The notes under the pieces were generated by a model. It was not told where the DNA came from, ran no database searches, and saw nothing but the letters and a program-made list of their open reading frames with translations. A program made the position numbers and the translations under genes. A stretch of 64,000 bases of DNA from Auanema rhodensis (Eukaryota > Animalia > Nematoda), in assembly GCA_964057225.1 (NCBI GenBank), contig OZ059898.1, positions 8,928,001-8,992,000 on the forward strand, in the 5' to 3' direction. This document shows positions 3,001 to 26,375 of the stretch, piece by piece; position 1 is the first letter of the stretch; each line of letters starts with the position of its first letter.

Positions 3001-6000
3001 CATCGAAGTTTGGGGGCATAGAAATTGTGATGTAGATTATGAGCACAAGCTTGATGCTGAGGAAAAGAGTAAATCACTTCAAGTTAGCAATCTCATTTTT
3101 CAAATATTTAAACATGATATTAAGGCTCGGTGGTCCGAAGTATCAAGGAGAATGGAATTATTTACCGAATTTCGTGAACTCTCTGATAATGGACAATGGG
3201 CTCCTGTAGAAGTCAGACAACAAGATGATGTATGTACAGGAGGTGTTCATCAACTGAAGCAAGGTCAACAAAGAAGGTTATTGGTCGGATTGTCTGTTCC
3301 ACCTGTGGGAGGGCTTCCACTTGGAGTCGATTCAATAACATCTGTATCCATCGGATGTGTGTGTGTAAGACAAGCTGATGTTCATAAGTCACTGGATAGT
3401 TATCAAGAAGAGGATTTGGACAGGCTACGTTGTCAATGGTCTGAAGCCTTAAAAACCCGCCAAAGGTATTTGGAGCTTCAGCTAGATTCAGTAAGACTAT
3501 GACCCTCAACGATTTTTTGATTATTATTTTTTTTAGTTATCATCTAAAGATGCTAAAACTGAGTTGGAAAAGGAAAGAGAACATAGCTTGATGGGGCAAT
3601 GGATATCACTAACTGAGGAGCGTACTGCTGTCTTTGTCCCGCCTCCTAATTCTGACATACCAGGTGCACCATTTGACTGGTAAGTAAATAAAAATATTAT
3701 ATATTATCAATTTCTTAATTAAAGGGACCCACCAGAGGGAGTTGAAAAGCATGTTCCTGTTTTATTTTTGGACTTGAATTCTGACGATATGACTGGAGAA
3801 CTTACTAGTGATGAAGCTGCCCCTAGGACTCCTGGACTTCATTCAATATTACCTAAGGAGCATAGTGGTGGCCCCCCCGTTATTCTTCCAATTTTGAGTT
3901 ATGATGAAAATCAGGTAATTATAGAAAATTTGAGAATTTATCATCAATTAATGTTTAGTTGACTGCCACTTGTTCATGGGATAGTTCTATTCATGATCAT
4001 GCTGCTCTTAATATGCCTTCCGGCCCCAACGATAGAGTTTATGCTGTAGTAAAAGTTTCTGTAAGATTATCACATCCATGCTCCATGGAAGTTGTTCTAA
4101 GAAAGCGGGTTTGCCTACATATCTATAAAAAAGTAAATAATTTATTCATTATTCTCCATGAACTTTCTATTCTAGACGAGTTTAACAGAACGTATCTTCA
4201 AACGAATCGTTGGAACTGACCCATTATTTAGAACTTCCGTACTGTACGATGTTGTAGCACATATTCCTAAAGTCAGTTTTTCCATCTTCAAATTATAATA
4301 TTTGAAATTTTCATTTTAGTCATCGCATGATATGGAAGAGAGATCTTCTTTAGCATTAATGGCTGCCCAGCACACATCATCAGCTGATGATGAAAATGAA
4401 ATTGAGCAACAAACGAATAAACAATTAAGGTTTTATTTTATTCATAATCAATTCATCAAGTTTATAATATTCCAGCTACATCGAAGCGTATACTAAATCA
4501 ATTCAAGCTGTTGAATCAATGCTTAAATTGGATAGGCTTCGACAAGAAGTTGCTATTACAAATATGCTGAGCAAGTGCGTTTACTTGATTCTTACCAAAA
4601 TTAAAATTTCCATTTTTCTTTCAGGAAAGATCGACTTCAGCGACTTACACATTTAGGAATTCCTTCTCAAGGTTTCCGTATGAAACGAGCAGTTAGTCTT
4701 CCTAATACTAGTGCTATTTCAGTATGCTAAACTAGAATTTTAGATAACATAAACCTATTTTGTTTCTTTTAGCCTAGCTGCCCTCCTACGATCCCTACTA
4801 ATAATGCTCCTAACAGAATGGGAACTTCTATGATGACTGAAACAACACCTAGGAGACAGGGTGATACGCCAATGAGCATAAGCACAAACTCTTCTTTAGG
4901 TAAGAAATTTTTATAGCGATGCAGAAAATGGCAACTACTACTCATTTTAAAGCTGTTAGCAAACAGCAACACTAAAACAATGTCGCTAAAACAATCTTTT
5001 TTTCCTGATTATGCGGCATTCGCATGACCCGTCTAGGCCTTCTGGCTGCCTCATTTAATTTTGCTTTCTAAAATTAGAGCTTAGCACTCTAGGTAATTCG
5101 TAGATCTATCTTTCTATCTATCTTCTAAAGTAACTTCCTTGGTTTCTCTATCTCGAAGTTGACGACTGTGCTTTGACTTCGCATCTGTTCACGCTGGTGG
5201 TTGTTAAACACACAGAGCGGAAACGCCAAAAAATTTTCCTGCAGGCTTGTCGGAACTAATTAGATGGCTATGACAGACTGTTCCGGAAGAATCACGATTA
5301 TTAAAACACTTAATAATTTTTACCACGCACTCACAGCATTATGATTCAACGATTCAGCTTTAATCAGAACCATATCTTCGTGCTCCTTGCTAAAACCTAG
5401 ACCTTTTCAGTTCGGCCCACTTTCCTTAATCTGAAACCGTTATATAACGGAAAATGTAGGTTTTCTCTCCCACCTGAGTTGTGAGCCTTGCCAGAGTGAT
5501 CATATCGTATTCTTCGCGTTTTCTCCACCGTTTTGCCAATCCAACCGTGATTTATCCAAGTTATACATGCAGGTTGCTTAGCATGTCACTGCTCATGTTT
5601 TTGTTATGTAGCCGATACGTGCCGATAATTTTGCGGATTTCTGATCTCATCAATATAGCATATAATTTTTGGTTTGATGCTTGAATGTGTATGCTTTTCT
5701 GAAAAAGAAATGTATGTTGTAGTAGCATGAATGTTGTTCTTTTTTCTCCGTTAGTTGTGATCATATTGTTGCGGAACGTTTACTGTGGGGGAACGTTCAA
5801 TTAGTCATAGCAAGTTGTTTTCACATTTATTTCATTTTAGTAACTAGTCTGGCCAGTCCATTGAATGAGCGTCTAGGAGGTATTGTTGAAGAGAATACTT
5901 CGAAAACTCATGAGGTTTGATAGTATACATGATAATTTAATAATTTCTCCTTTAAGATGTACCCTCCCAGATCAAATACCGTACCTGAGACTCTTAATAC

Positions 6001-6735: not shown

Positions 6736-9700
6736 TTATGCCTTTTTAGTCTTCTTCTTCTTATCAACAGTTCCCTTTCCTTTAGTTTTTCTTTTTCTTG
6801 TATCTTTCTCCGTGTCCATGACAGAGAAATCGTAACTGTCTTCCGCTAAAGGTAACGCTTCTCCTTTTTTGCCTTTTGATAGCTCTGGAAATCAAAAAGA
6901 TGATCAGCTATTTTTGATTATTGAAATTATACCAGGATAATCCTCCCCCTCATCATCATCATCGTCAATCTCAACATCATCTTCATCTTCATCTTTTTCA
7001 ATATCAGTCACATCTTCATCGTCCATTTCAATATCTGACATGTTAGAGATGTCTGAATCTTCATCATCATCAACATTCAACTCGCCAGAAGCAACTAAAA
7101 ATAATTTGTTATACCAAGGTGAACTTTGAAATATGTCATTTATTTTTTTTTAGCGGCAAGTGAAAATATGGACCCTTTGTTTCCGATAATTTTTTTTGAT
7201 CATGTTCAGAAAGCACATAGCATGATCCATCAATGCAATAGTCCTCAATCTCTAAAACATCAGCAAGAGGGGCACGAGGTCCATCGATAGGAGGAAAATC
7301 AGAGTCGAAACCATAAGATAGACTATCCAAAACCATCTTCAGAAAAAACCAAACGATTTAAATTAGTACATTAATATGGATAAGAAACACAGCTTTAAGT
7401 AATATTTAAAGAAATATGAGATATTATGCTACAATACGAACAAATGATCGCGACTAACAAGTGTTTAGTGCACAACGCTTTGAGCATTAGGCCCATGAAC
7501 AAATTATCCCTGCTGGGTACGGAAATTTGAAGTCGTTCATTGTTATTGGTTCTCGGTTCTGATTCTAAGGATTACTACATAATTAAGAAAAGGCATTGCA
7601 GTTATAGGTTGTGTTGAGTTATCGAGCTTCAGAAAATAAAAATATAATACTATCATTGCGTAATAATGTAAAAGTACTCGCAAAGGTTATAGAATCCAAC
7701 AAACAGGTATATCAAATTGCGTTACTGCAAAAACAGTTAAGCAGTCTTGAGACAAAGAAAAGCAGGCTGCATTGAAAACTACAAATTATCGAAGAAAATG
7801 AGAACCTACTCGCTTTCCTTTCTAAATTTTAAAATATATTGAAACTGATTCAAGTCAGCACAAGAAATAGATCTCAGTGAACCTATCAAGAATAATAATA
7901 AAAAACAAAAGTTCAAAAACAGAATAGCTATAACCTCTTCTGAAAATTCAATCTTTTGAATCAGAATGGTCATTGAGATTGACAAAGAGTGGGAATTGAT
8001 AAATTGAGAAATAAAATTCAATACTTTTCATGTTTTTGGCGATGCTATATTTCGGAAATAGCCTTAAACGAAATGTTTAAAAGGTTATTTCTAAGTGCAA
8101 AACCGTTTTAGATCTTAAGAATAATATAACATTTAAAAAAGGAAGGACAACAAACACAACCACCTATTTTTTTAAAGATACTTAAAGAAGAAAAATTGGT
8201 TAAGGCTGCATTTCAAAAAATGGCCCCCATGGATTTCATCCTAATGCTCATTGGATTTTGCGCGAAAAAAGACGTCTGTCGGAAGAACATGGGCAGGATA
8301 AGATAAAAGATTCTAGAACGTAGAAGAGAAGATGATGTATAAGCATGCCAAAGATGGATGACCAACAGAATGAGGCGCTTAAATGAACAAAATTATGTGA
8401 CAACTTCGACACAGATGGGATTTGATGACAACAAGTGTGCACGTTTCTAGAAATTAGTTTCATTATAGCAAATTGCTGAGCTATGTTGTATGCGCTGCAA
8501 AAGCTGTATTCTAACCAGACATAAAGAAAAACTGATGCAAGATCTTCAAATATTACAAATTTAGAGAAATGGCCACAAAAGAATATTGCAAACTGACTGA
8601 ACCAACAACTATGAAGAATAGAGGCCTTGTGGTAATGCATAAACACGATAGCTTTAGATAAGAGAACAGCATTGAAGGAAAAAACAAGAAGCATCATTGG
8701 TAGAGGGAATGTATCAAAAATACTATAAGACATGCTAAACTCCAACAGATTTTATTTGGCATCTCCAATTACTTGTTGGGATCCAAGTTTTTCATCCATT
8801 CTGCCAAAAAATCGAACGCGAAAAACTTCAAAAAAGCTACTCACATATACAATCAAAAGCTATACTGGAAAACTAGCTTAAGTTGCATAACTGAGAAAAC
8901 TAAAGAATAAGCTTGCCGAAACATTATATGAAAGTACAGGGGATGGTGTTAAAAGGAAAAAATATTCAGAGAACTCATAATACCGTGAAGCATTGTTGAA
9001 TTATTAACAAATGATTCACTTAGTCACATCGTCCTCATCATGTACCAAAAGCGTAATTAATTAAATATATGAACGTGATGTGAACTTTCAAAAAGGAATA
9101 GTGCATGTTATTAAAATTTGAAAAAGAAAGGATACGATCGATTCGTAATGTTTCAGCTTGAACTCATTAAAATGAGTTGGTAGTTTAGTCAATTATTTGA
9201 AGAAATTACTGGTAGTAATAATGTGGAGTAAACAACAACTGAGTTAACGAACCTTTTTGCAAAGCCTTCTTGAATTTTTTCCCTTCTAAATGATTCGTAA
9301 GAGTTGCTGGATCTCGGCTCAAAACTTTTTTTGTCAGTTTGCATCCCAACAATTTTTCACTAAAACACAATGTTAGGTTCTCGACATGAATAAGATGCAT
9401 ACTCCAAGTCCTCAAACACATCAGGATGCTGAACTAAAATTTCATGAATAGCCCAAGCTGTTTGGAACTTTTTAGTACTGGTATATTCCTGAATAGTGCA
9501 AAGTGTATACTAAATCAACTCATGCATACCTTCAAAATCGCACTTGTAGGTTTCAATTCATGGCCCGTAATGATACATTTCAACTGGAAAAAAATATACT
9601 AGACAATGTTAGAAAGTTTAGAAATGTTGAGTAGGCTACTTATTCAAATATTAGCTTGAAGTACCCAAAATATACTGAAACAATTTTTCCAATCTTATAT

Positions 9701-9822
9701 AGATTAAAAATAAAGCCCTCGTAAAAAAAATTCGAAATAGTTCTCACCTTATTAAAAGGAGCTTCAACAAAAACATTATACTTCTCTAAAATTTCTTTAG
9801 CCTGTTTATCTTCAGCAGACAT
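6736..9822 (-). CDS. Surfeit locus protein 2 (SURF2)-like nucleolar protein
   Basis: Exons read MSAEDKQAKEILEKYNVFVEAPFNK / LKCIITGHELKPTSAILK / EYTSTKKFQTAW...DVFEDL / EKLLGCKLTKKVLSRDPATLTNHLEGKKFKKALQK, followed by an acidic D/E tract and a basic tail ending KKKTKKA-TAA. This matches the SURF2 layout (C..TGHEL; CKLT...H..GK.F). One 2.16 kb intron, 7095-9252. Confidence 0.82.
7136..7336 (-). CDS. Candidate nested 66-aa ORF inside the SURF2 intron
   Basis: ATG immediately follows a pyrimidine tract plus AG (ttttttctgaag|ATG), as at other trans-spliced starts in this window. Sequence has ordinary protein composition (MVLDSLSYGFDSDFPPIDGPRAPLADVLEIEDYCIDGSCYVLSEHD...). No homology recognised. 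Confidence 0.3.
   Translation of the reverse strand: MVLDSLSYGFDSDFPPIDGPRAPLADVLEIEDYCIDGSCYVLSEHDQKKLSETKGPYFHLPLKKNK
8248..8795 (-). CDS. Candidate nested hydrophobic ~170-aa ORF inside the SURF2 intron
   Basis: 165-codon open frame at 8248-8745. It can be extended by a 38-nt GT-AG intron to MKNLDPNN-MSYSIFDTF..., and is preceded by a GTGAGT...ttttggcag intron. The strand is T-rich, so a chance ORF is possible. Confidence 0.25.
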
Positions 9823-9961: not shown

Positions 9962-11483
9962 TTACAATTCAATTTTTCTATTCGATTTCTTCATCCCAAA
10001 ATATGTTGTGAGTCTTTTGATCTTTCCATTATCTCTTTCACGTTTCACGATATGCGAAAAAGTTGATACGCAATTTCCTACGAAATGGTCTGAAAGCCCT
10101 AATATTGCCAAGCTAACGTAAGGGTTTTTATCGGTCAATTTATAAGCTTGGATCTGAAAAGAAAAATTGAGTAGTGAAATGAACTAAGCATTTTACATCA
10201 TATGGTTTCAAAGCATCATTAATTTCCTCAATCATATGATCATTATCACTCGAAACAAATACGGATTTGGCTCCAATGTTACCGACAGTTTCAAGGACCT
10301 TAACAAAAAAATGAGGCAAACAAGCAAAAAGTATATTTACGTGATTGAGAATAGTTTCAGTTGAAGGAAAACACATGTCCTTTGTTAATTTTCCCTTATG
10401 ATGATTTACTCCTAAGCATTGAGCTGAGGCGAATAAGGGAGTATTTTTTTCAATATCGATATGTTCACATACAGAAACCTAAACTTAAAAAATTAATTCA
10501 ATACGATAATTTACGATACCCAATCTCTTTCATTTCTTAGATGAATTCCCACAAAAGGCTTGATAAGTGTGTTGGATATGAACTGCTTAGCTTCTCCTAA
10601 GACACGTGAATTCCATCGGAGATATCTTCAGAAAAAACTAATTTTCAAATCTCATACTTATTCAAACTTTTGTAGTTCCCAAACTTTTGATCTAGATGGG
10701 AATGAAGCAGGAGCAGAGGGGAATGCAAGAACTGGATAAGCAGATGAGTTGAATCTAAAACTTTGTTATGCCGAAAATATAAAAAAAAACTAAAAACCTA
10801 TTGAGCCATGCTGCTAGAGAGCCTTTGGTTTCCAATTCATAAGCACCCGGTATATCTCCAAAATATTCATCTTCAATAAAATTAACGTTAACTTTATCCC
10901 AATATGGTCCAAACGGATTTCCTTCCTTAAAAAATATTTAATAGTTTTTTTGATAAGGGAATAACCTTTGGGTGGCATCCCAGAGGAGCTTTAGAATCGA
11001 ATATCGAACGTCTTGGAGACCAACATAGAGCTAAAAGGTAAAACCAAATATAAAAAAATTAAAAATTTTTTTAACCGTTTCTTTTTTCCTCGGGCCATAT
11101 ATTGGGTGCTACGTACTTCATGAAATCATGCATAGTAATAACCTTTAAATACTGTTTGATAGGATTCAATTGAAAAAGACTTTCAAAAGGAACAAAACTC
11201 TAAAAAATATAAAATAATAAGAAGAAAAAGGATACTTCCATACAGTTTGAGTTACTTTGAATTCTATAAAATTGGGCAACACCAGTGTCCGATCTAAATT
11301 TCTTGCAAAATCCATAACACCAAGTAATTGGTCTATTTGATTGCCGAAGCGTCCTGGAAATTGAGTTCCACTTCGAACTTCCAAAGCTTACATACCCATA
11401 CAAGGACAGAACACAACATAGCCTTGTGGATCAATTTCAGCAGCATTTACTAAAGAAAATACAAAGAAAAGAATTAACTTCAT
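9962..11483 (-). CDS. pfut-1: Protein O-fucosyltransferase 1 (GT65)
   Basis: Signal peptide, then [71 protein letters not shown] and SDHFVGNCVSTFSHIVKRER. Ends in an ER-retention-like KIEL-TAA. Confidence 0.95.
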
Positions 11484-12826: not shown

Positions 12827-13964
12827 GTATATTCTATATGAATTCTTTCAACGATAAAAGAATATCTTAATATTACGGAAACTCGAAAAAGCCATAACTA
12901 TGTAAGACAGGGAGAGCAAAAGTTGATGACTTAGAAATATAATTAGATTCTATACATAAGAAATCTATAATTAAACGAGAATGTTCAAATGTTCTGCCAT
13001 CAGCCTCAAAATAAGGAATCGTGAACAAAAAATACTTGTGGGTAAGTCAAGTAGAGAAAGTAAGCTCTCAAACGCACTAGATGCTTTTTTCAATCAGAAG
13101 CTCGTACATCCTATAATAGAGATAGGGGGGCGAATAAATGAGGTCTTTTATATGAAGCACAAGCTGCAAACTTGGACCAAACTAACGAGGAAAAAGGAAG
13201 CGGTCGCATTATATGTCTTCTAATTTGTTTAATCTTCAAGGCATGCTTTGAAAGTATAAAAAGCGTTCTGAGTTAAGCGACTTCTTAGAATACTAAGCAT
13301 ATGAGCATATACATTAAAACAAAAAGTTATGAATTGAATCCTATTTACTTTGTTTCATCTCAAACTCCGCAAATTGTCAGTTATATGACATGCAATGTCA
13401 CAGGATTAAATCAGAATAAAGCTCATGGGAAGCCGAACAGACCGGACTTTAATAAGAGCTGTAGTACTTATTCAATATTGTTTATCTCAGAATTTAGAGT
13501 GAACCACTTGAATTGAATAAAACACAACTTACTCAAACTATGGGATTCTGCTTCTAAAGTTGGCCAGCCACAATATTAATGCCTACAAGATAAATTTTTA
13601 AATAGGAAATGAAATCAATAATTTATAGAAAAAAAGAAGATTCCATCAATGATTATTAGTCGCCTTTAAATTAAAAAAAAATGATGAAACGAAGTCTATA
13701 TTAGTTCAGGCCCGGTATTAAACGATAAGGTTAATATTTATGTACGCAATTACGTATGCTTTACGTTTGTGTTTGTCGTCTTTTTTTAAGCCGTTAACAT
13801 CAGAAGAGTTTTGTTAAATTATTATTTCACGTGAATAATATTGTTAAAATGTAAAATCATTAAACATGTTTATTTCAAAATGACAATATACATTAATGTA
13901 AAATATATTTATAGTACAATACATCACCTAATATTAATTCTGATCGTTGTATATTTACAAATAT

Positions 13965-16900
13965 TTACAATTTACTTCTCTCACCTGCCATCATAGGTTT
14001 CAAATATCTGTCGAAGTTTGGATTCGTCTGAAACAAGCAAATTGGAATTTTGAAGCATTTATTTGTACTTACACCACGATTGTAATCATTAAGAGGACTC
14101 ATCTGCGCCCATTTGTATAAATTCTCATAAACATTTCCGTCTCTTCGTCCCAGAACCTAAAATGATGAATAGTTTCAAATATTTGAACTCAGGTCAGGCT
14201 TACAGATCTCAATGATCGATCATTCAATTCAAATCCATCAATTACTGATACAGCATTAGGTCTGAAAACGGCATACAGTGCGTATAAAGTCTCTTTCATA
14301 TGCTTTAATTGATCCTGTGTCATATAGTGGTTCTAAAATATAAAGTGGATTGCGTATCTTTTGAAAAAAAACCTACAGCAAAAAGATGGTTAGATTGTTG
14401 TATAAGTTCATAATTCAAATAAATTTTGAATAAAACATTAAGTACATCGTACGTATGCTTGTCCATGACAGAATCTAAAGTTTTCTTGAACGTATGAGCT
14501 AAGAATACGAATGCATGTGCGCGGGATGCCTAGAATTAAGCTAGTTTTATCAGAAGTGTTTTTGAAACCCACTTTGCACAATTCAATTCCATTGGCATTC
14601 CAGGCTTCTTCTTCGGACAGTCCAGATTTAAGTAATCTTTCGAGACGATCATACGCATCGAATATTTTTGTTCGGGCAATATATTCGAAATCAGCAAGAT
14701 AATGAGAGCAATCTGAACAAATAAATATAACCTTATAAAATAACATTGTGAATATTTACCGCCTTCTGGAACACGATCAACGAGAGAATGATTATTCGTT
14801 TTTTTGATATAAGCCATGAGTGATCCTATTTTCTTTCCTTCTCTGGCATCTTTCGCAGATCTCATTAAAGATCTGAAAAAAAAATTATTTACTTATTAAA
14901 ACGTATAGAATAATATAACCTTGCTGTTTGTAATAGCATTACAATGTTTTCACCTTCATATGTACATGCTCCAGCTTCACATGCTAAAATATTAAATTAT
15001 ATTTTTCCAAATCTAGTAGAGATATACCATATAATGTAGGAAGATTACTAGCGTCAGAATAACCGTGTCCTCCACAAGCCATTCTACATTGTTCTATACC
15101 TTCAGTAGTTTGGAATGTAGCTACAGATTTTAGGCAGCACGATAAACCATGCAAAGCAGCCAGAGCTTCAACCTAATAATTTTTTTATAATAAAGAGGAC
15201 ATTTACGAATGAATTACTTCTCCTTTCTTAACATCATCTAAGACTTCGGTGGTCATGTTTCTTATTTCAAGACCAGCAAAATGGAAAGCCAGGGCTTTAG
15301 CAATTTGAGGAAATAGACGATGCTGTTGAGTTTGGTAGTCAAGAATTCTAACTTCTCCTGCTCTAAACTCATGACATAAGGAAATATTCATATTACTGTT
15401 AGGTAAACCCTGGTGTGATCTCTCCTTGTCTTCTAATACATCCGTAACGTACAGCAATAGAGAGTGCAGACATTAAGTGAATAGCTGCATGAGATAATAT
15501 TTCAGATCGAACGTAAACCATAGTTGTGTATCCAATTTTGGCATGGCTTGGCTTAATATATGTACCATCAGCTTCAACCTGCAAAAAAGTAAAGCATTAA
15601 ATAGTTTTTTTCTAATAACAACAACTATATTTTACATAATTAAAAATTCACTAAATGTAAACTTTCTTAAAAATTAGAAGCACCTTTGCGTGTCTCATAA
15701 GCATGTTACGTCTAGGGATTCTGAAATTGTCAAAGCCCAAATATCCATTGTCTATTCCTTTAACTCCCATTTTTGAGCCGATATCTCCAATTCGTACTCC
15801 TACAAATTGATTTATGTTTGTTGAATTTACCATTAAAATTAAAACCTGGGAGCGGTTGATGATTATTGGTGTTACGAATTTGAACAAAAAAGTTATGGGC
15901 TCCATAATTCTGACCATCAATTATCAAGTTAGCGACAAGCACAACATGGTTGCAAGTGGTTCCAAGACCACCAGGCCACCTGTAGCAGCATTATATGAAT
16001 AGATTGAAAAATTTTCAATCTTACCATTTCAATGATGTGGTTGTTGGACTCAATAGTACGAACTCTTCAGTAGATTTGTCATAGGTTGCTTGAGTTTCAA
16101 TCTTCTTCAAATTTGTCCCTACAAAATATAATCCAAATTATCATTTAATCTCTAATTTTGATCTTTTTATCATTTTTTCCAATATTATAGCCACGTTTTC
16201 ACTCATTTTCGAGCTGACTGTAGAATTGCTCCTGATTAAACCATCTGATAACAATTGAAAACAAAAAAAATTAAAATTAAATTATTTGAAAAATGCAGAA
16301 CTACAATGATGTTGTGTGAATCAAAGTATGTTATATAAATTTAAAAAAGTTGAATTAATTAGTTTACCGTGTCCCATTTCTGTCTGCGCATATGTTCCAA
16401 GGATTTCTCCTTTCAAAGCTTTCCATAGCCACCATTCAACTTGCTCTTCATCAGCTTGATTCTGAATGGTTGGAACAAACATCAGATTATGAAGAGCAAG
16501 AGGAAATCCTTCAACTCCCATGACATCTCTGAGTTAACAATGTATATAATTGTAGATTGAAAAAGACTCACTTTGTAACATGCAAAACTTCAAAAGCGTT
16601 CATAGGATCAACGAATTCAGGAAGTTTTTGGAAAAGCTCTCGCATCTATTATAATTAGTGTTCAAATAAATAAATAATGCAAAAAGTTACCTTTCTGGTT
16701 TGCTCAGCAACTTTTTCAACTCTATCAAGATGTCCCATATGTGCGGAATCATGGAGTTCGGGGCGTTTACTAATTTCATCAGAAATTTCCCGAAGGCGTT
16801 CAAGCGTCTTTAAATTAACAACAATAACATGATAGAAAGTTGAAGGAATGAAATAAATTTGTAAAAAATTTATATACCTGTTTTCCCCCATGAAGAACAG

Positions 16901-16991
16901 CAGCTAACTCATCTGTATCAAAGGTGGCACGAAGCCGTTCGGCAGTCAAATCTTCGTTGTCACCGCTTGCAATCTTTTTGTTTAATGGCAT
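13965..16991 (-). CDS. Peroxisomal acyl-CoA oxidase, ACOX-1 family
   Basis: [106 protein letters not shown] and [25 protein letters not shown]-terminal PTS1 SKL-TAA; ttttcag acceptor 1 nt before the ATG. Confidence 0.95.
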
Positions 16992-17129
16992 ACTGAAAAT
17001 ATTACTGTAAAAATTAGAGAAGTAATAAAAAAGAAAACACGATTAACATGACATAAATTTTCTTTTATGAGCTACTGCTCAAAGAAGCACTTTTACATAT
17101 AATTTTCTCAACCGGAGACGGATATCCCG

Positions 17130-17360
17130 CCCCTAAAATGATAAGGAACGAAAAGTAAAAGACTGTTGTACGTCACCAGTAAACTTCAATTTTTCCTTAA
17201 GGTTCACGATAAGAGGCAATAAGTTAGCAAGACAAAGAAGATAAAAAGACAAAATGCATGAGGAGAAAAGAACTATTTAGAAAAGTAAGATGGTTGAGAA
17301 AGATGAAATATCAAGAGGAACAGAAATCAAGTCAAAAGAAAGGATTAAATGATAAGGGTA
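17130..17360. promoter_or_regulatory. GATA-site cluster upstream of the acyl-CoA oxidase
   Basis: TGATAAG at 17139 and 17350, plus CGATAAG and AGATAA between them. This pattern is typical of ELT-type intestinal/epidermal promoters. Confidence 0.45.
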
Positions 17361-17607
17361 GAGTCTGTATCAGTTAATTTTCCAAAAATTGAATTCTTAT
17401 TTTAGCATTAACGCTCTTTGATCTTATCTTGATGTTGCTTTGAAAAAAATATACAATTGTTTTTTTTTTAATGTTTTTTTAAAAAATATAGTTCACAATG
17501 AATTTTCCTGAATGTCCGAACCTATAGATTGCGGATTTTGATTAGTTTTCATGATATTCATTTAATCAATTAATCATTATGTTTTATCTTGAAATGAAAA
17601 CAAAGTT

Positions 17608-17760: not shown

Positions 17761-19032
17761 ATATATCTTATCTCTAGTAATGTTAATTCTTCAGTATATG
17801 TTGATTTATAATTAAATTTTTTTCTTGAACATTATTTTTCACATCTTCAATTTCAAATATAAATGCAACATTTTATATTTCTGACTTATAAAATCTAAAA
17901 AAAAGAATTGATATTATTATATAAAAAAAAATAAAAACTAAAAACTCTTTATCTATTTATCTATTATTGAACATTGTTGCATTCTTTGCAAATTTTATCT
18001 CGTTCAGCTCTGATATTCTCATGCCAAAAAGTAAATTTAGAACCCTTTTCGCCTTTTGGTCTATTTAAAATTCACAGATAGAACATCAAAAAGTTTTTTT
18101 CTAGAATAAGTTAAATGCTAATTTACCAAATGTCTAATTATATTACCTTTTTCAAATAAATCCGACTAACAAATGCCGTCTCAAGTAAAAATTTAACTGT
18201 CACATTCTTCCTATCCCTTTATATAGGTTTACTACTTTTATTTAAATAGCCAAGCGAGGAACTCAAAGGTGATTCATTGCAAGGTAATTAATCGGAGATT
18301 TCTAAGAACTTTCATACCTAAACGACCTTACACAACATAACAGATGCATGATACTTAGTGACCCGAATACTGTCAAACATGAGGATAATCAAAGAACAGT
18401 GATAAGCATCGAAGAGGTCATAAGGATCCACACAAACCAACACCTAAGTGACATAAAGTATCACTTTAAAGAATATAAGATTTAACAGATATAGAAACAA
18501 CCATTTATTATATGTGGAATGAGACAAAATAAAAATTAATCGCTATATCCATCTAAAAATTTCGACGCGGCTAGTTATAACTGTGCAAAAATACTTCCCG
18601 AATAATCATAATTACAAAGTAACAAACTTTGAGATCATAAAGTGTCAAAGTATCTTCTCTAACGATATGGACGGCTAAGTGAAAGACGGAACCGTGTCCA
18701 ACTCGTATAATTGGGAGCTTTCGGGTCATGGGAGAAGTGAAGTTCCCGAATGGGATATGGTCACCGGTTCGGCTTCTAGTATAAGCTTTCTAGATATCTC
18801 AAAAGTCTATACGCTACATAGTTGCCTTGTTTTCACATAGATACTGGACGAATACTGAACTAAGGAATAACGAAGAGAAGGGTCTAAAAGCAAGCACTTT
18901 AAAAGAATGTGCTAAATTAAAACTATTATAAAAAATACAATAAACGATAATATGCGCATGGTATAGGGTTGACACCGGGGGCCAACAAGACTAGCTAACC
19001 CAACATAATGAGATATCCGGAAATATATTTGT

Positions 19033-21816
19033 CTACAAAGTGTTGCCCATGTCAGACCAATCACCTCCACAGAAAAGGTCTGGTAAAGCTACATCAGAAG
19101 GTGGGTATTGATATGGATCTTCCTTCAAATAATTTAAATTTTTAACATATGTACGTATAAGTAAAATGAATACCTCGGTTAGCTCAGGTTCCAAAGACAG
19201 AAATGAACCTGGAGGAGCATCCAAATCACCAAACGATGGAGCGGATAAAAAGGCCGAAGGGTCAGCGAGCATCTAAAGATAAAATTGCAGAAAGAGTATA
19301 TCATGAACAAAATACTTTCAAAGGGCTCATGAACACTCCAGGACTTTGAAGATGAGTAAGATATTTTCCAGGAGTTACAAGATCACTAGTGCTATTTTGC
19401 ATTGATGTTGATGGTACAACTACTTCATCCTGAATAAACGCTCCTGTTCAATAATTTTAATAGAGCAAATTTTACTTGGCTAGTTTGTGATGGTGGTGGA
19501 TGTGGTCCATGATGCATTGAATTACTAGCCACACCGGCTTCTTTCGTAGCTTCAGGAGTTACACCTTCGGATTTAATTGGAAGATTTCCATCATGCGAAG
19601 ATACTGGAAAGATGCCTGTAATAAATAAACTTATAGTATTGCTTCCTTGTTAAATCGATAAAACATTAAATCATTTATCTTAAATACCCCACCTTGTTCA
19701 GTTGCAATAGTATTGCCGTGAACTTGGCTGCATACCGTGGAGTCCGAAGGACATAACAATGCTTGCAAAACCTGATTCATATCGTTCTTGATCATAAGCT
19801 GGAATTTTCCAGTGGCGACAGGATCAGACACCTGGAATAGCATTATAATAAAAATAAAATTTCGCCAAGAAGCACCTCAATGTATGAATATGATTCCTGA
19901 GGAGCTTTTATAGCAATCAGAGTCTGATGAACAAATTGAGGAACAGAACGAAGGTCAGAGAATCGGACGTAACTGGAAATAAAATTATAAAGATCTCTAG
20001 AAAAATATGTAAAACCTATAAGGCTTATCAGTTGGATCCTCTTTGGCTAACTTCAAAGCAGCAGATAAATCGTGAATTAATCCATCTAATCGATCCTCTT
20101 CCCTTTGTAGCTCAATACAATCATTCCAAATAGCTTTCATTTCGCTCTCATCGCAATCAGGTGTCCTAGATAATAGTTTTGCATTACTAATAACCCATTC
20201 TAAAAGTACTCACTTCCATCTAATACTATTCTTACCAACTTTCTCAACTAAATCAATTCCTTCCAAAACGTTAGTAATATCATATAAACGTCGTTTCGGA
20301 ACCAATAGTTGCTGAGCAGCATCATTCAAATTTAAAACCTAAAAATGTTTTTCAAATAGGTGAATATTCTTGTTAATACATACCTCGTACTGATCCTTAA
20401 GTGATAAGAATTTCTTAGTAGTCATCAACAGAGAATTATCCATTCTAGATCCCCCATGTGTAACTGAATTCAAAACATAAAACACTGTTGAAACAATATG
20501 ATTCATTCATACCATAGGGAACAGCAAAATCTACATTTTGCTGTCCATATTTTCTCTTGCGAGTAGGGTTATTAATGTTATTTATTATCTTATTAGTTTT
20601 AGATTCGACATTCTTGACTTGGTTAGGATTATTTAGGGGCCAAAAGTATTGGTCAAGTTCTTGTTTAATATCTTTAGAGTCAAGAGCAGTTTTAATATAT
20701 GGTTGTAAAGCATCAAATAAAGATATGTCAGATGGACAAACAAGGGACATTAGGGGAAGTCTAATTATATTCAAAAAATGAAAGCCTTCTTCGGAAAATA
20801 TTCAATGGCAATACACTTGTGATTAATAGTTATGAACAGTAAAAATTAAGCACTGCTTGGGAGTATAGCCAGAGGATAAGATAGAAGAGACACCTGCTCG
20901 TTAATACAATTGGCCTGTCACTGAGATACAGAACTAGATAAGGTCAAGAAGAAAAATATTTTTTTGAACGCAAAATTTTTTGTTTTGTTTTGGATAATAT
21001 GATTAATCAATAAGGGGAGGAGCGAGATATTGACTACAGTTTTTTTCAAAATAATAAGTAACAAACCTGTTGTCTCAGTAAAAGATGATTGGTTAACAGC
21101 ACTTCCGGGAGCTTTTCTTTTACCAGCGCGTACTAAAAATGTTATGTATATTTATGATTTTGCATTGTGTTTCTTAGAGTCCATTATTTATCTAATGTTT
21201 TTCCTTTATAATACCTTTTGGTTTTGTATCTTGAGCAGGATACATATTCAAAAGAAAATTTTCTGAAGAATTATTTGATCCCATACTAAGCATATTGTCC
21301 ACAACCTGACCATGGGATGATAAACCCTCTAAATCCAATTTTCGTCTAGCCTGAAATGCCTAGCATAAAGTATTCGAAAGGAATAGAAAACTAACCTTAT
21401 CAGCTTTTGAATTATTGTTACGATAATACATAGCAGGAGCACTGACTGGGGTTTCATTCAAAAGTCTCCATGACTGAATATCATCAGGGGTGCAACTATA
21501 ACTGTTTCATCAATTTCGTTTTCTACCATTTTAAGATATTCTTACACTTCACTTTTGGGAACTGCTAAGCCTAGTGGCATATTAGCGATTTCTGGACTTT
21601 TGGCACATTGCTGACTTGGAATTGAAGCCAATTGAATTTGACTCTATAATGTTTTAAATATTTAACGAGAAAAACAACGTTATGTTTTCAAATATTAAAA
21701 ATTAACTTATGAAAGAATGACAAACGAACTTCGTAATATTTACTGATTGGAAGTTGTCTTACCGGATCGCCGTAATTGTATGCATCTCCGTAATACTGGT
21801 ATCCTTGTGATTCCAT
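19033..21816 (-). CDS. efl-2: E2F transcription factor, efl-2-like
   Basis: DNA-binding domain [64 protein letters not shown], closer to EFL-2 than EFL-1 as I recall them. Also a dimerisation/marked box (AYVTSDSLT...[10 protein letters not shown]), N-terminal ARRKLDL and C-terminal FLSLEP...PYQY...LPDLF. Confidence 0.85.
20513..20760 (-). CDS. Alternative first coding exon of the E2F gene
   Basis: Acceptor AG 10 nt before the ATG at 20750; open frame MSLVCPSD...[18 protein letters not shown]; phase-1 GTATGA donor joins the DNA-binding exon at 20463 in frame. Read as a cassette from the upstream phase-1 donor it gives an immediate stop (GAC TTC CCC TAA). Confidence 0.65.
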
Positions 21817-21907
21817 GAATCAAGCTCAAGCTATCTATTTATTATCTGAAAAATTTGATAAAACTTTTAGCGTGAAAATTATTTTAAAAAAAGCTAAAAT
21901 TCTCTAT

Positions 21908-21957
21908 GCGCGAAATCATGGTTTTACAATTCCAAACGAAGATTCTTCCCGCCAAAA
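21908..21957. promoter_or_regulatory. E2F/DP binding sites in the E2F gene promoter
   Basis: GCGCGAAA (21908-21915) and TTCCCGCCAAAA (21946-21957) lie 90-140 bp upstream of the ATG in AT-rich surroundings. Confidence 0.65.
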
Positions 21958-22605
21958 ACTATCCAATTGCAGCTCCGCCTATTGCGTATACACTTCTATA
22001 CACTCAGCGTATGGCAATACGCCAAATTTAAGATATTTAAAATTTTAATATATTTATTATTTTTAATCCAATTTTTTTAGTAAAATGATTAATCAAGTTT
22101 ATAATAGAAATTAGAAACCAAATTCCATAGCAGATTTATGTAATTAGATTAGAATATGAAAAATGAGATTTTAATTAATTGAAAAAGAACATGATTAATT
22201 TAAATCATGGTATTTAGAAGTGCAGTATTAGTGTTATTTTTTAGAATATTAGTAAAAATACTAGGACGTTGTATTAAATTGTTAGTATTGGTTTTAAAAA
22301 GAAACTAAACAGTTTAATAGATTGGGGTTGCATGGGGTTCAAGTTACAATTTTAAATATTTAAGGAAAATAAAAAATCTGTCCATTGAATAAAAGGTGCA
22401 GAAAATTCAAAAACTTACTTGATCCGAGTAACTCTTCATCTTGAAGATAATATGAAGGTTGCTTAATTCCCAAAGCTCTTCGCGCTTATTTGACTGAGCT
22501 AATTTACACATATTACAATAGTGTCCTAAAATGGCAATAGCTTTTATCGAATCTGATGAACTAATAGAGCCATGAACATTCCTTGATATAAGTAAGCGCT
22601 GTATC

Positions 22606-22657
22606 TTTCCCGCCTCAGTACTGTCCCGCGCCCGCCACAATTTGAAGCACGCGCCAA
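22606..22657. promoter_or_regulatory. E2F site and CDE/CHR-like element upstream of gfm-1
   Basis: TTTCCCGC (22606-22613); CCCGCC-acaa-TTTGAA (22631-22646) with the 4-nt CDE-CHR spacer; CGCGCC just downstream. Confidence 0.55.
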
Positions 22658-22802
22658 TTAATGAGATGCATATATATTTTAATGTTTTAATAATAAATTA
22701 GTTAAATTAATTAGTGATATTATATCAATCTGATAAAGCAGATTGAGTGGGATATGAATGAATCATTTATTTTTTCAGGTTTGTACCCTCGCTTGAGGTA
22801 AA

Positions 22803-25965
<3,163 letters not shown>

Positions 25966-26375
25966 ATTAGATTTTAATTTATAGTTTTTATATTCGTATA
26001 TTTCATATTATTAGTTTGTCATTTTTTAGATACTCAAAGTAGAAATTTAGAAATCTTATAGATGTCATGAATATTAGATGCTCATAGGTTTTGTTATTGT
26101 TATTGAAAATTCATTGTTATAATTTCTGTTACTAATTCAATGAACTTTTTCTTATCGTTGTCTATTTCAGTTTACCCTAGTATGGATGAGTTAAAACCAA
26201 AACTCATAGATTTTCACCGCGACAACTGATTAAAAACTGGAAATTAATTATGATAACGGATAAAATGAAGGTTATGTTAACAGAAGGCCTACATTCAAGA
26301 AGTATATAAGCCGAGTTGTTAACAGCTATATTCAGAGCGTTCATCGCCTCAAGAATTTATTTCTCTTGAGCAAAT

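Follow-up and report, generated by a model that had tools for sequence, protein, structure and literature searches.

Two first exons, with and without a predicted cyclin-docking motif, at an efl-2-type E2F gene of the nematode Auanema rhodensis

Can a single nematode E2F gene provide one protein with an N-terminal cyclin-docking motif (Cy or RxL motif) and a second protein without it? E2F1-3 are switched off in S phase via an N-terminal cyclin A dock. We analysed a stretch of 64,000 nucleotides (nt) of the Auanema rhodensis genome (GenBank assembly GCA_964057225.1, contig OZ059898.1, positions 8,928,001 to 8,992,000), here called the window, whose numbering is used for all A. rhodensis positions. 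A gene on its minus strand is, judged by its sequence, an E2F of the efl-2 type (E2F1/2/3 subgroup) of a rhabditid nematode near Auanema sp. JU1783. This gene has two first exons: a promoter with E2F sites gives rise to a five-exon N-terminal part with the Cy motif (long head), and a start site within an intron to a different N-terminal part without RxL, encoded by exon 1b (short head). We consider a switch of predicted cyclin docking by these two exons the likely explanation of the locus.

Assembled RNA contigs from four public runs (X1-X4) of one study were mapped to window positions 18300-22500. About half of the words of the stretch searched were present in the four runs, as expected for exons only. 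The contigs contained 14 joints, all of them CT..AC on the plus strand, which corresponds to GT..AG for a minus-strand gene, and zero mismatches. These joints and the perfect match identify the records as cDNA of A. rhodensis itself. Two joints end at the same position, 20463, which is the acceptor of the first exon shared by both forms (20384-20463, minus strand) and the start of the winged-helix DNA-binding domain. The long-form joint 21067>20463 was detected in four of four runs (depth 47, 63, 70 and 8) and the short-form joint 20513>20463 in three (X1-X3; depth 55, 72 and 95). With both joints found at similar depth, the locus produces two mRNAs with different N-termini, as an initial annotation made from the sequence had predicted, with these two junctions named as a check. 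The short and long depths sum roughly to the depth of the shared contigs (92, 108 and 145), and the depth of 1b equals or exceeds that of the long-specific contigs in three runs. The ratio of short to long form is lower in X4 than in X1-X3, contig depth being a poor measure and the samples being unlabelled. Both heads end in phase 1 and continue into the same exon at 20463, so that the DNA-binding, dimerisation and marked-box regions and the C-terminal tail are common to both proteins.

From 20513 the short-form contigs extend without a break to 21008 (X1), 20948 (X2) and 20840 (X3), and none of them reaches exon 5 of the long head (21067-21132). The initial annotation had bounded the internal exon by an acceptor at 20760; use of this acceptor is not supported, as the contigs of the four runs showed neither a joint nor a loose end there. 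Since the contigs continue past 20760 and stop before exon 5, 1b is an alternative first exon and neither an acceptor-bounded exon nor a retained intron. A second transcription start lies inside the 603-nt intron before the DNA-binding exon, and an intronic promoter must be located at or upstream of the leader at 20751-21008. Addition of the spliced leader SL1 at 20760 was also considered and is not reflected by any joint or loose end in the contigs, although contigs cannot exclude a spliced leader.

Exons were searched and translated singly, with phase arithmetic for each exon on the minus strand. Exon 1b comprises an untranslated leader (20751-21008, minus strand) with ragged 5' ends at 21008, 20948 and 20840, which gives a length of at least 90-258 nt, and a coding part (20513-20750, minus strand) with an ATG at 20750, 79 codons plus 1 nt and a phase-1 donor after 20513, reading in frame to 20463. 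The ATG, the basic RKRK motif and the phase-1 donor of the self-contained exon proposed initially are thus in place, and only its bounding acceptor is lost. The encoded peptide contains the motif PSDISLFD (20712-20735) and the basic cluster RKRK (20550-20561). A consensus scan of the short head detected no strict RxL match and no SP/TP site. The 316 nt between exon 5 and the ATG at 20750 (21066-20751) contain no ATG, where shuffled sequences lead one to expect 4.4 (P 0.008); by comparison, 8 ATGs occur in the 355 nt of the gene's other introns. This ATG-free stretch looks like a translated leader under selection. No Pfam family matched the 1b peptide, a word search with its 79 residues (limited by the length window) gave no candidate, and BLASTP against 150 representatives gave nothing significant. 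A PIP-box reading of KQELDQYF in the short head was rejected, as the spacing is kept neither in the sister species nor in strongylids.

The long head is encoded by five exons on the minus strand. Exon 1a (21730-21845) carries the ATG at 21816 and is joined to exon 2 (joint 21643<>21730). Calculated from their record coordinates, the 545-nt contigs from runs X2 and X3 share an end at 21845, directly behind TTTTCAG. This end fits the trans-splice acceptor guessed in the initial annotation, and no leader letters are reported for it. The first intron is spliced from the donor after 21730 (GAA|GTTCGT), which makes the head 11 residues longer than the donor after 21763 would. It is this second, in-frame donor (GDP|SQIQ) to which the deposited protein of the sister species corresponds. 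Either the two donors are used alternatively, or the sister annotation is mis-predicted at this point. Exon 2 (21546-21643; 75% identical to the sister protein described below) and exon 3 (21396-21495; 82% identical) are both delimited by RNA joints and contain an SP site (KSPE) and two TP sites (CTPD, ETPV), respectively. Exon 4 (21215-21350) opens with ARRKLDLEG (21324-21350; core ARRKLDL 21330-21350), and exon 5 (21067-21132) contains the basic cluster GKRK (21113-21124) and the phase-1 donor after 21067, whose joint was found in four runs. ARRKLDL was thus read at the position given for it initially, and the long N-terminus has its own GKRK as noted there.

By its relation to other E2F proteins, ARRKLDLEG is the predicted cyclin A docking motif of animal E2F1-3, at the same relative place. 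It is the only match to the strict RxL consensus (PMC12356897) in either head, which bears out the prediction of a long N-terminus with and an internal N-terminus without this motif; the sole other RxL match in the protein sits inside the folded DNA-binding domain. Upstream of ARRKLDLEG, the three SP/TP sites of exons 2 and 3 are shared with the sister species. ARRKLDLEG aligns with AKRKLDLEG (salamander E2F2) and VKRKLDLD (fish E2F1) of the animal E2F1/2/3 proteins. It shares the core R-K-L-D-L-E-G with salamander E2F2, lies N-terminal to the DNA-binding domain as in human E2F1 and vertebrate E2F2, and is close to VKRRLDL, the human E2F1 peptide co-crystallised with cyclin A2. It differs from the human E2F1 site in position P-4 (Ala here, Val there) and in its distance to the DNA-binding domain (about 70 versus about 45 residues), and docking is predicted here. 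A profile of the nematode Cy region that was built without the window matched window exon 4 with E 2e-4 (4812 six-frame segments). As strict matches seldom bind a cyclin, the case for a Cy motif is built on positional homology with a proven site and not on the consensus.

Two candidate E2F sites are located 63-111 nt upstream of the 5' end of the contigs, in the upstream promoter where the initial annotation had expected them. The distal site TTTGGCGG (extended TTTTTGGCGGGAA; 2 matches in 64 kb versus 0.48 expected) lies at 21949-21956 and the proximal site TTTCGCGC at 21908-21915, both on the minus strand. In the corresponding locus of Auanema sp. JU1783 (L001), TTTGGCGG is kept letter for letter at 5836-5843 and TTTCGCGC at 5876-5883 within an invariant GATTTCGCGCATA block, with the same spacing and amid otherwise diverged sequence. 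No E2F site was found in the intronic region 20751-21066. The GATAAG motifs of this region, which the initial annotation had contrasted with the E2F sites of the upstream promoter, are indeed present at 20875 and 20937. A role in a GATA-driven internal promoter was rejected: GATAAG occurs in the window at chance frequency (43 copies versus 41 expected), both copies lie inside the transcribed leader of X1 and X2, and neither is conserved in L001.

A protein search with the DNA-binding exon retrieved a 490-residue protein of Auanema sp. JU1783 (P0004). Its locus L001 is syntenic with the window (EF-G, E2F, acyl-CoA oxidase) at about 70% nucleotide identity, and the protein keeps ARRKLDLE and GKRK. 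Between exon 5 and the DNA-binding exon, L001 contains an open reading frame (ORF; 6928-7156) with an ATG, 76 codons and a phase-1 GT donor. Its peptide shows 35% identity to the window 1b peptide (tblastn E 2e-8; BLASTP E 2e-9), with islands of conservation at the N-terminal PS[DE]ISLF, at RKRK and at F.V just before the donor. The tBLASTn search proposed initially for the internal exon thus led to a syntenic ORF in the same phase.

A single Pfam E2F_TDP domain (PF02319; 74.4 bits) and the marked-box profile PF16421 (65 bits) were found in P0004. In the window, the second DNA-binding-domain exon (20213-20338, minus strand), which is 100% identical to P0004, reaches 65.7 bits for E2F_TDP from this exon alone (cut-off 25.7). 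PF16421 (E2F_CC-MB) is matched by separate window exons at profile positions 6-35 (14.5 bits) and 40-66 (27 bits); each piece is below the cut-off of 33.9 because the exons were searched apart. In a word search with P0004, non-nematode animal matches were named E2F3, E2F2 or E2F1 and plant matches E2FA/C; grouped by names, no E2F4/5 was among the 120 matches listed. Nematode orthologs, by their names only, are called 'efl-2' (P. pacificus) and 'BMA-EFL-2' by the sources, and by these names the gene would belong to the orthologue group of C. elegans EFL-2.

A regular-expression scan of retrieved proteins, for a motif about 40-70 residues before the DNA-binding domain, revealed the Cy motif in Steinernema, Toxocara, Plectus, Acrobeloides, Diploscapter, Pristionchus, Ditylenchus, Meloidogyne, Heterodera, Dictyocaulus and Parelaphostrongylus as well as in E2F1/2/3 of other animals, from sea anemone to vertebrates. 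Degenerate forms were found in Ancylostoma, Strongylus and Mesorhabditis, with loss of the second hydrophobic position in KARRKLAIKR (Ancylostoma) and KARRRLAEAL (Mesorhabditis). The motif is absent from the retrieved filarial and Strongyloides proteins.

Both types of head were found at one locus in Toxocara, Steinernema hermaphroditum and Mesorhabditis belari. The Toxocara canis long head reads ARRKLNLEG; at this locus (L003) the Cy exon lies at 11180-11317, and the first exon of a short model (P0036) at 17358-17603, within the 5.4-kb intron of the long form and about 260 nt before the shared exon at 17869. For Steinernema hermaphroditum (QR680_016760) the layout was read from two deposited proteins that share one locus tag, one with an ARRKLDLD head and one with a different head, without a clear PSDISL motif, which diverge just before the shared exon. 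Mesorhabditis belari has, on one contig, a long form with KARRRL... and a short form starting ...AEISLHSLDD. The short heads of strongylids (Angiostrongylus, Nippostrongylus and a Heligmosomoides-like transcript) and window 1b have P[SA][DN]ISL[LM]D, K.EV..YI.P and a basic cluster in common. The models of Dictyocaulus, Parelaphostrongylus and P. pacificus contain both modules in one protein, with an internal Met where short heads start elsewhere, and could be read-through predictions or real serial use.

The EFL-2-like proteins of the basal Caenorhabditis species C. bovis and C. angaria have heads of the short type only, with PKRKY before the DNA-binding domain and [DE]INLHDI. A Cy module was found neither within 10 kb upstream in C. 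bovis nor in the C. angaria proteins. A word search with the C. bovis protein did not reach C. elegans EFL-2.

Further observations were made on the retrieved loci. The filarial protein pairs P0163/P0170 (Acanthocheilonema) and P0175/P0180 (Dirofilaria), which have no Cy motif, differ by a cassette just before the DNA-binding exon (DTYQLKPS...). The cassette, which measures 27 residues in Acanthocheilonema and more in Dirofilaria, varies the same junction in a different manner. Toxocara canis L003 contains one of the long-head exon blocks twice (8141-8413 and 9531-9803; 94-100% identity), which inflates the 553-residue model and is either an intragenic tandem duplication or an assembly artefact. 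In the Ancylostoma duodenale locus (L004; 10222-10831) the Cy exon also forms part of P0009, an older model of 416 residues, where it follows a different first exon and is translated in another frame; this is probably a prediction error and not a third head.

Could both isoforms be real and ARRKLDL nevertheless serve mainly as part of a bipartite nuclear localisation signal (NLS) together with GKRK? In that case either head could stand in for the other as an NLS carrier, and the switch would alter only the time and place of expression. In both heads a basic cluster precedes the DNA-binding domain by about 20-30 residues, the NLS and the cyclin A site of E2F1-3 share one N-terminal region (PMC10740672), and the degenerate Ancylostoma and Mesorhabditis motifs given above fit such a role. 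However, the L-x-L core and the following acidic residue are kept from cnidarians to vertebrates and in most nematode clades, and an NLS alone needs neither. Moreover, both sister species keep the three upstream SP/TP sites, which the short head lacks. We regard this explanation as unlikely.

Less likely still, and in our view improbable, is that the short transcript is a by-product without a functional protein, derived from intronic noise or from partly processed long pre-mRNA with a cryptic donor at 20513. The ragged 5' ends, contigs from one study only, a fast-evolving 1b peptide and the lack of a Pfam match or of a homologue in the word search are what such a transcript would show. Yet 1b is at least as deep as the long-specific contigs in three runs. 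The contigs end before exon 5 and hence do not represent a retained intron of the long form, and exon 5 read into the intron hits a stop. The ORF with its ATG, phase-1 donor, RKRK and PS[DE]ISLF is kept in the sister species inside an AT-rich intron, the 316-nt leader is devoid of ATGs, and short-type heads are annotated in several other nematodes. Inclusion of 1b as a cassette exon is ruled out, as recognised initially, by an immediate stop: reading from 20760 ends after three codons (DFP*).

Several points weigh against two first exons with different cyclin docking as well. The contigs, all from one study, cannot reveal where transcripts truly begin, whether they carry a spliced leader, which strand they come from or in what ratio they occur, and the two isoforms are known from RNA and sequence and not at the protein level. 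The identity of the 1b peptides is only 35% even between sister species. The isoforms of Toxocara, Steinernema and Mesorhabditis are database gene models, and the fetched Ancylostoma duodenale locus (L004) revealed no short module. A profile of strongylid short heads ranked the window 1b ORF first of 4812 segments, with an E value of 0.025 that makes this a statistically weak link. Finally, ARRKLDL overlaps a basic stretch that could simply be an NLS, and fewer than 15% of strict RxL matches bound a cyclin (PMC12356897).

With two first exons at this locus, the isoforms would differ in function, as we infer from their motifs. The long isoform would be autoregulated by E2F via the upstream sites, and it would be docked and phosphorylated by S-phase cyclin-cyclin-dependent kinase (CDK) complexes and thereby switched off as E2F1 is. 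The short isoform may enter the nucleus through its own RKRK cluster and would escape cyclin-CDK docking, and its PSDISLFD-type motif may recruit a partner.

How far does this arrangement correspond to that of vertebrate E2F3, to which it was compared initially? The unique part of mammalian E2F3b is tiny, with 6 residues. The comparison applies to the promoter layout: in both cases an intronic promoter and a second first exon lead into shared exons, and the products differ only at the N-terminus. E2F control is confined to the upstream promoter in E2F3a/E2F3b (PMC6318215, PMC1914394), where 'E2F3a, but not E2F3b, is an E2F target gene' (PMC6318215), and here, by sequence, E2F sites are likewise found only at the upstream promoter. 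It does not apply to cyclin docking. E2F3b is itself a cyclin A target (He & Cress 2002, as cited in PMC1914394), and in reviews the cyclin A site is shown for E2F1-E2F3 as a whole (PMC10740672). As E2F3b keeps the cyclin A site and the NLS, whereas the short head has no RxL and a basic cluster of its own, the loss of the cyclin motif is a difference from E2F3a/b and not a parallel. The site of the junction differs too: 1b joins directly before the DNA-binding domain and thereby swaps the Cy motif, the SP/TP sites and the basic cluster for a 79-residue head with its own conserved motifs.

The remaining shared exons of the gene (18498-20165, minus strand) encode the coiled-coil/marked-box region and a tail with ...PDLF..., followed by a stop near 19037 and a 3' untranslated region (UTR) of about 540 nt; seven further GT..AG joints were found in this part, and the contig ends at 18498. 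The C-terminal ...DLF... in the last exon is a putative pocket-protein-binding/transactivation motif. The terminal ~150 nt of the 3'UTR (18492-18638) are 72% identical to L001 9147-9293, and the other parts of the UTR are without a match; this conserved block is a candidate regulatory element. The neighbours of the E2F gene are an EF-G-like GTPase gene (22589-25966) and an acyl-CoA oxidase gene (13946-17013); their order and orientation match those in Auanema sp. JU1783. Along the window, the G+C content drops from about 32-39% in the first half to 21-30% at 34000-64000.

The arrangement with two start exons is real, is present in several nematode groups and is little described. It is not a new kind of system, as alternative promoters in E2F genes are already known, and the isoforms of Steinernema, Mesorhabditis and Toxocara are already contained in genome annotations, without commentary. 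Among the papers searched, none links efl-2 to alternative promoters or cyclin docking. A survey from 2010 found EFL-2 unplaceable and concluded that the worm has no E2F of the E2F1/2/3 type (PMC3224931), and a paper from 2025 mentions EFL-2 just in passing. The nematode most used as a model, C. elegans, has thus far been described as lacking an E2F of the E2F1-3 type, and its EFL-2 is nearly unstudied.

We tentatively propose, as a possibility that falls short of probable, that efl-2 carries an old two-promoter switch, present at least in clades III-V, by which the protein is made with or without a module of cyclin docking and CDK sites. The docking-free head would have the motif [SA][DE]I[SN]L.D for a partner, and Caenorhabditis would have kept the docking-free form only. 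If true, the loss of the docking form in Caenorhabditis would explain both the unplaceable EFL-2 and the apparent lack of an E2F1/2/3-type factor in the worm, and the locus supplies a concrete hypothesis for the origin of EFL-2. As this locus shows, nematodes other than Caenorhabditis retain the Cy motif, the hallmark of E2F1-3, and can omit it through promoter choice. The locus is a natural and genetically tractable test of what E2F cyclin docking does in a whole animal.

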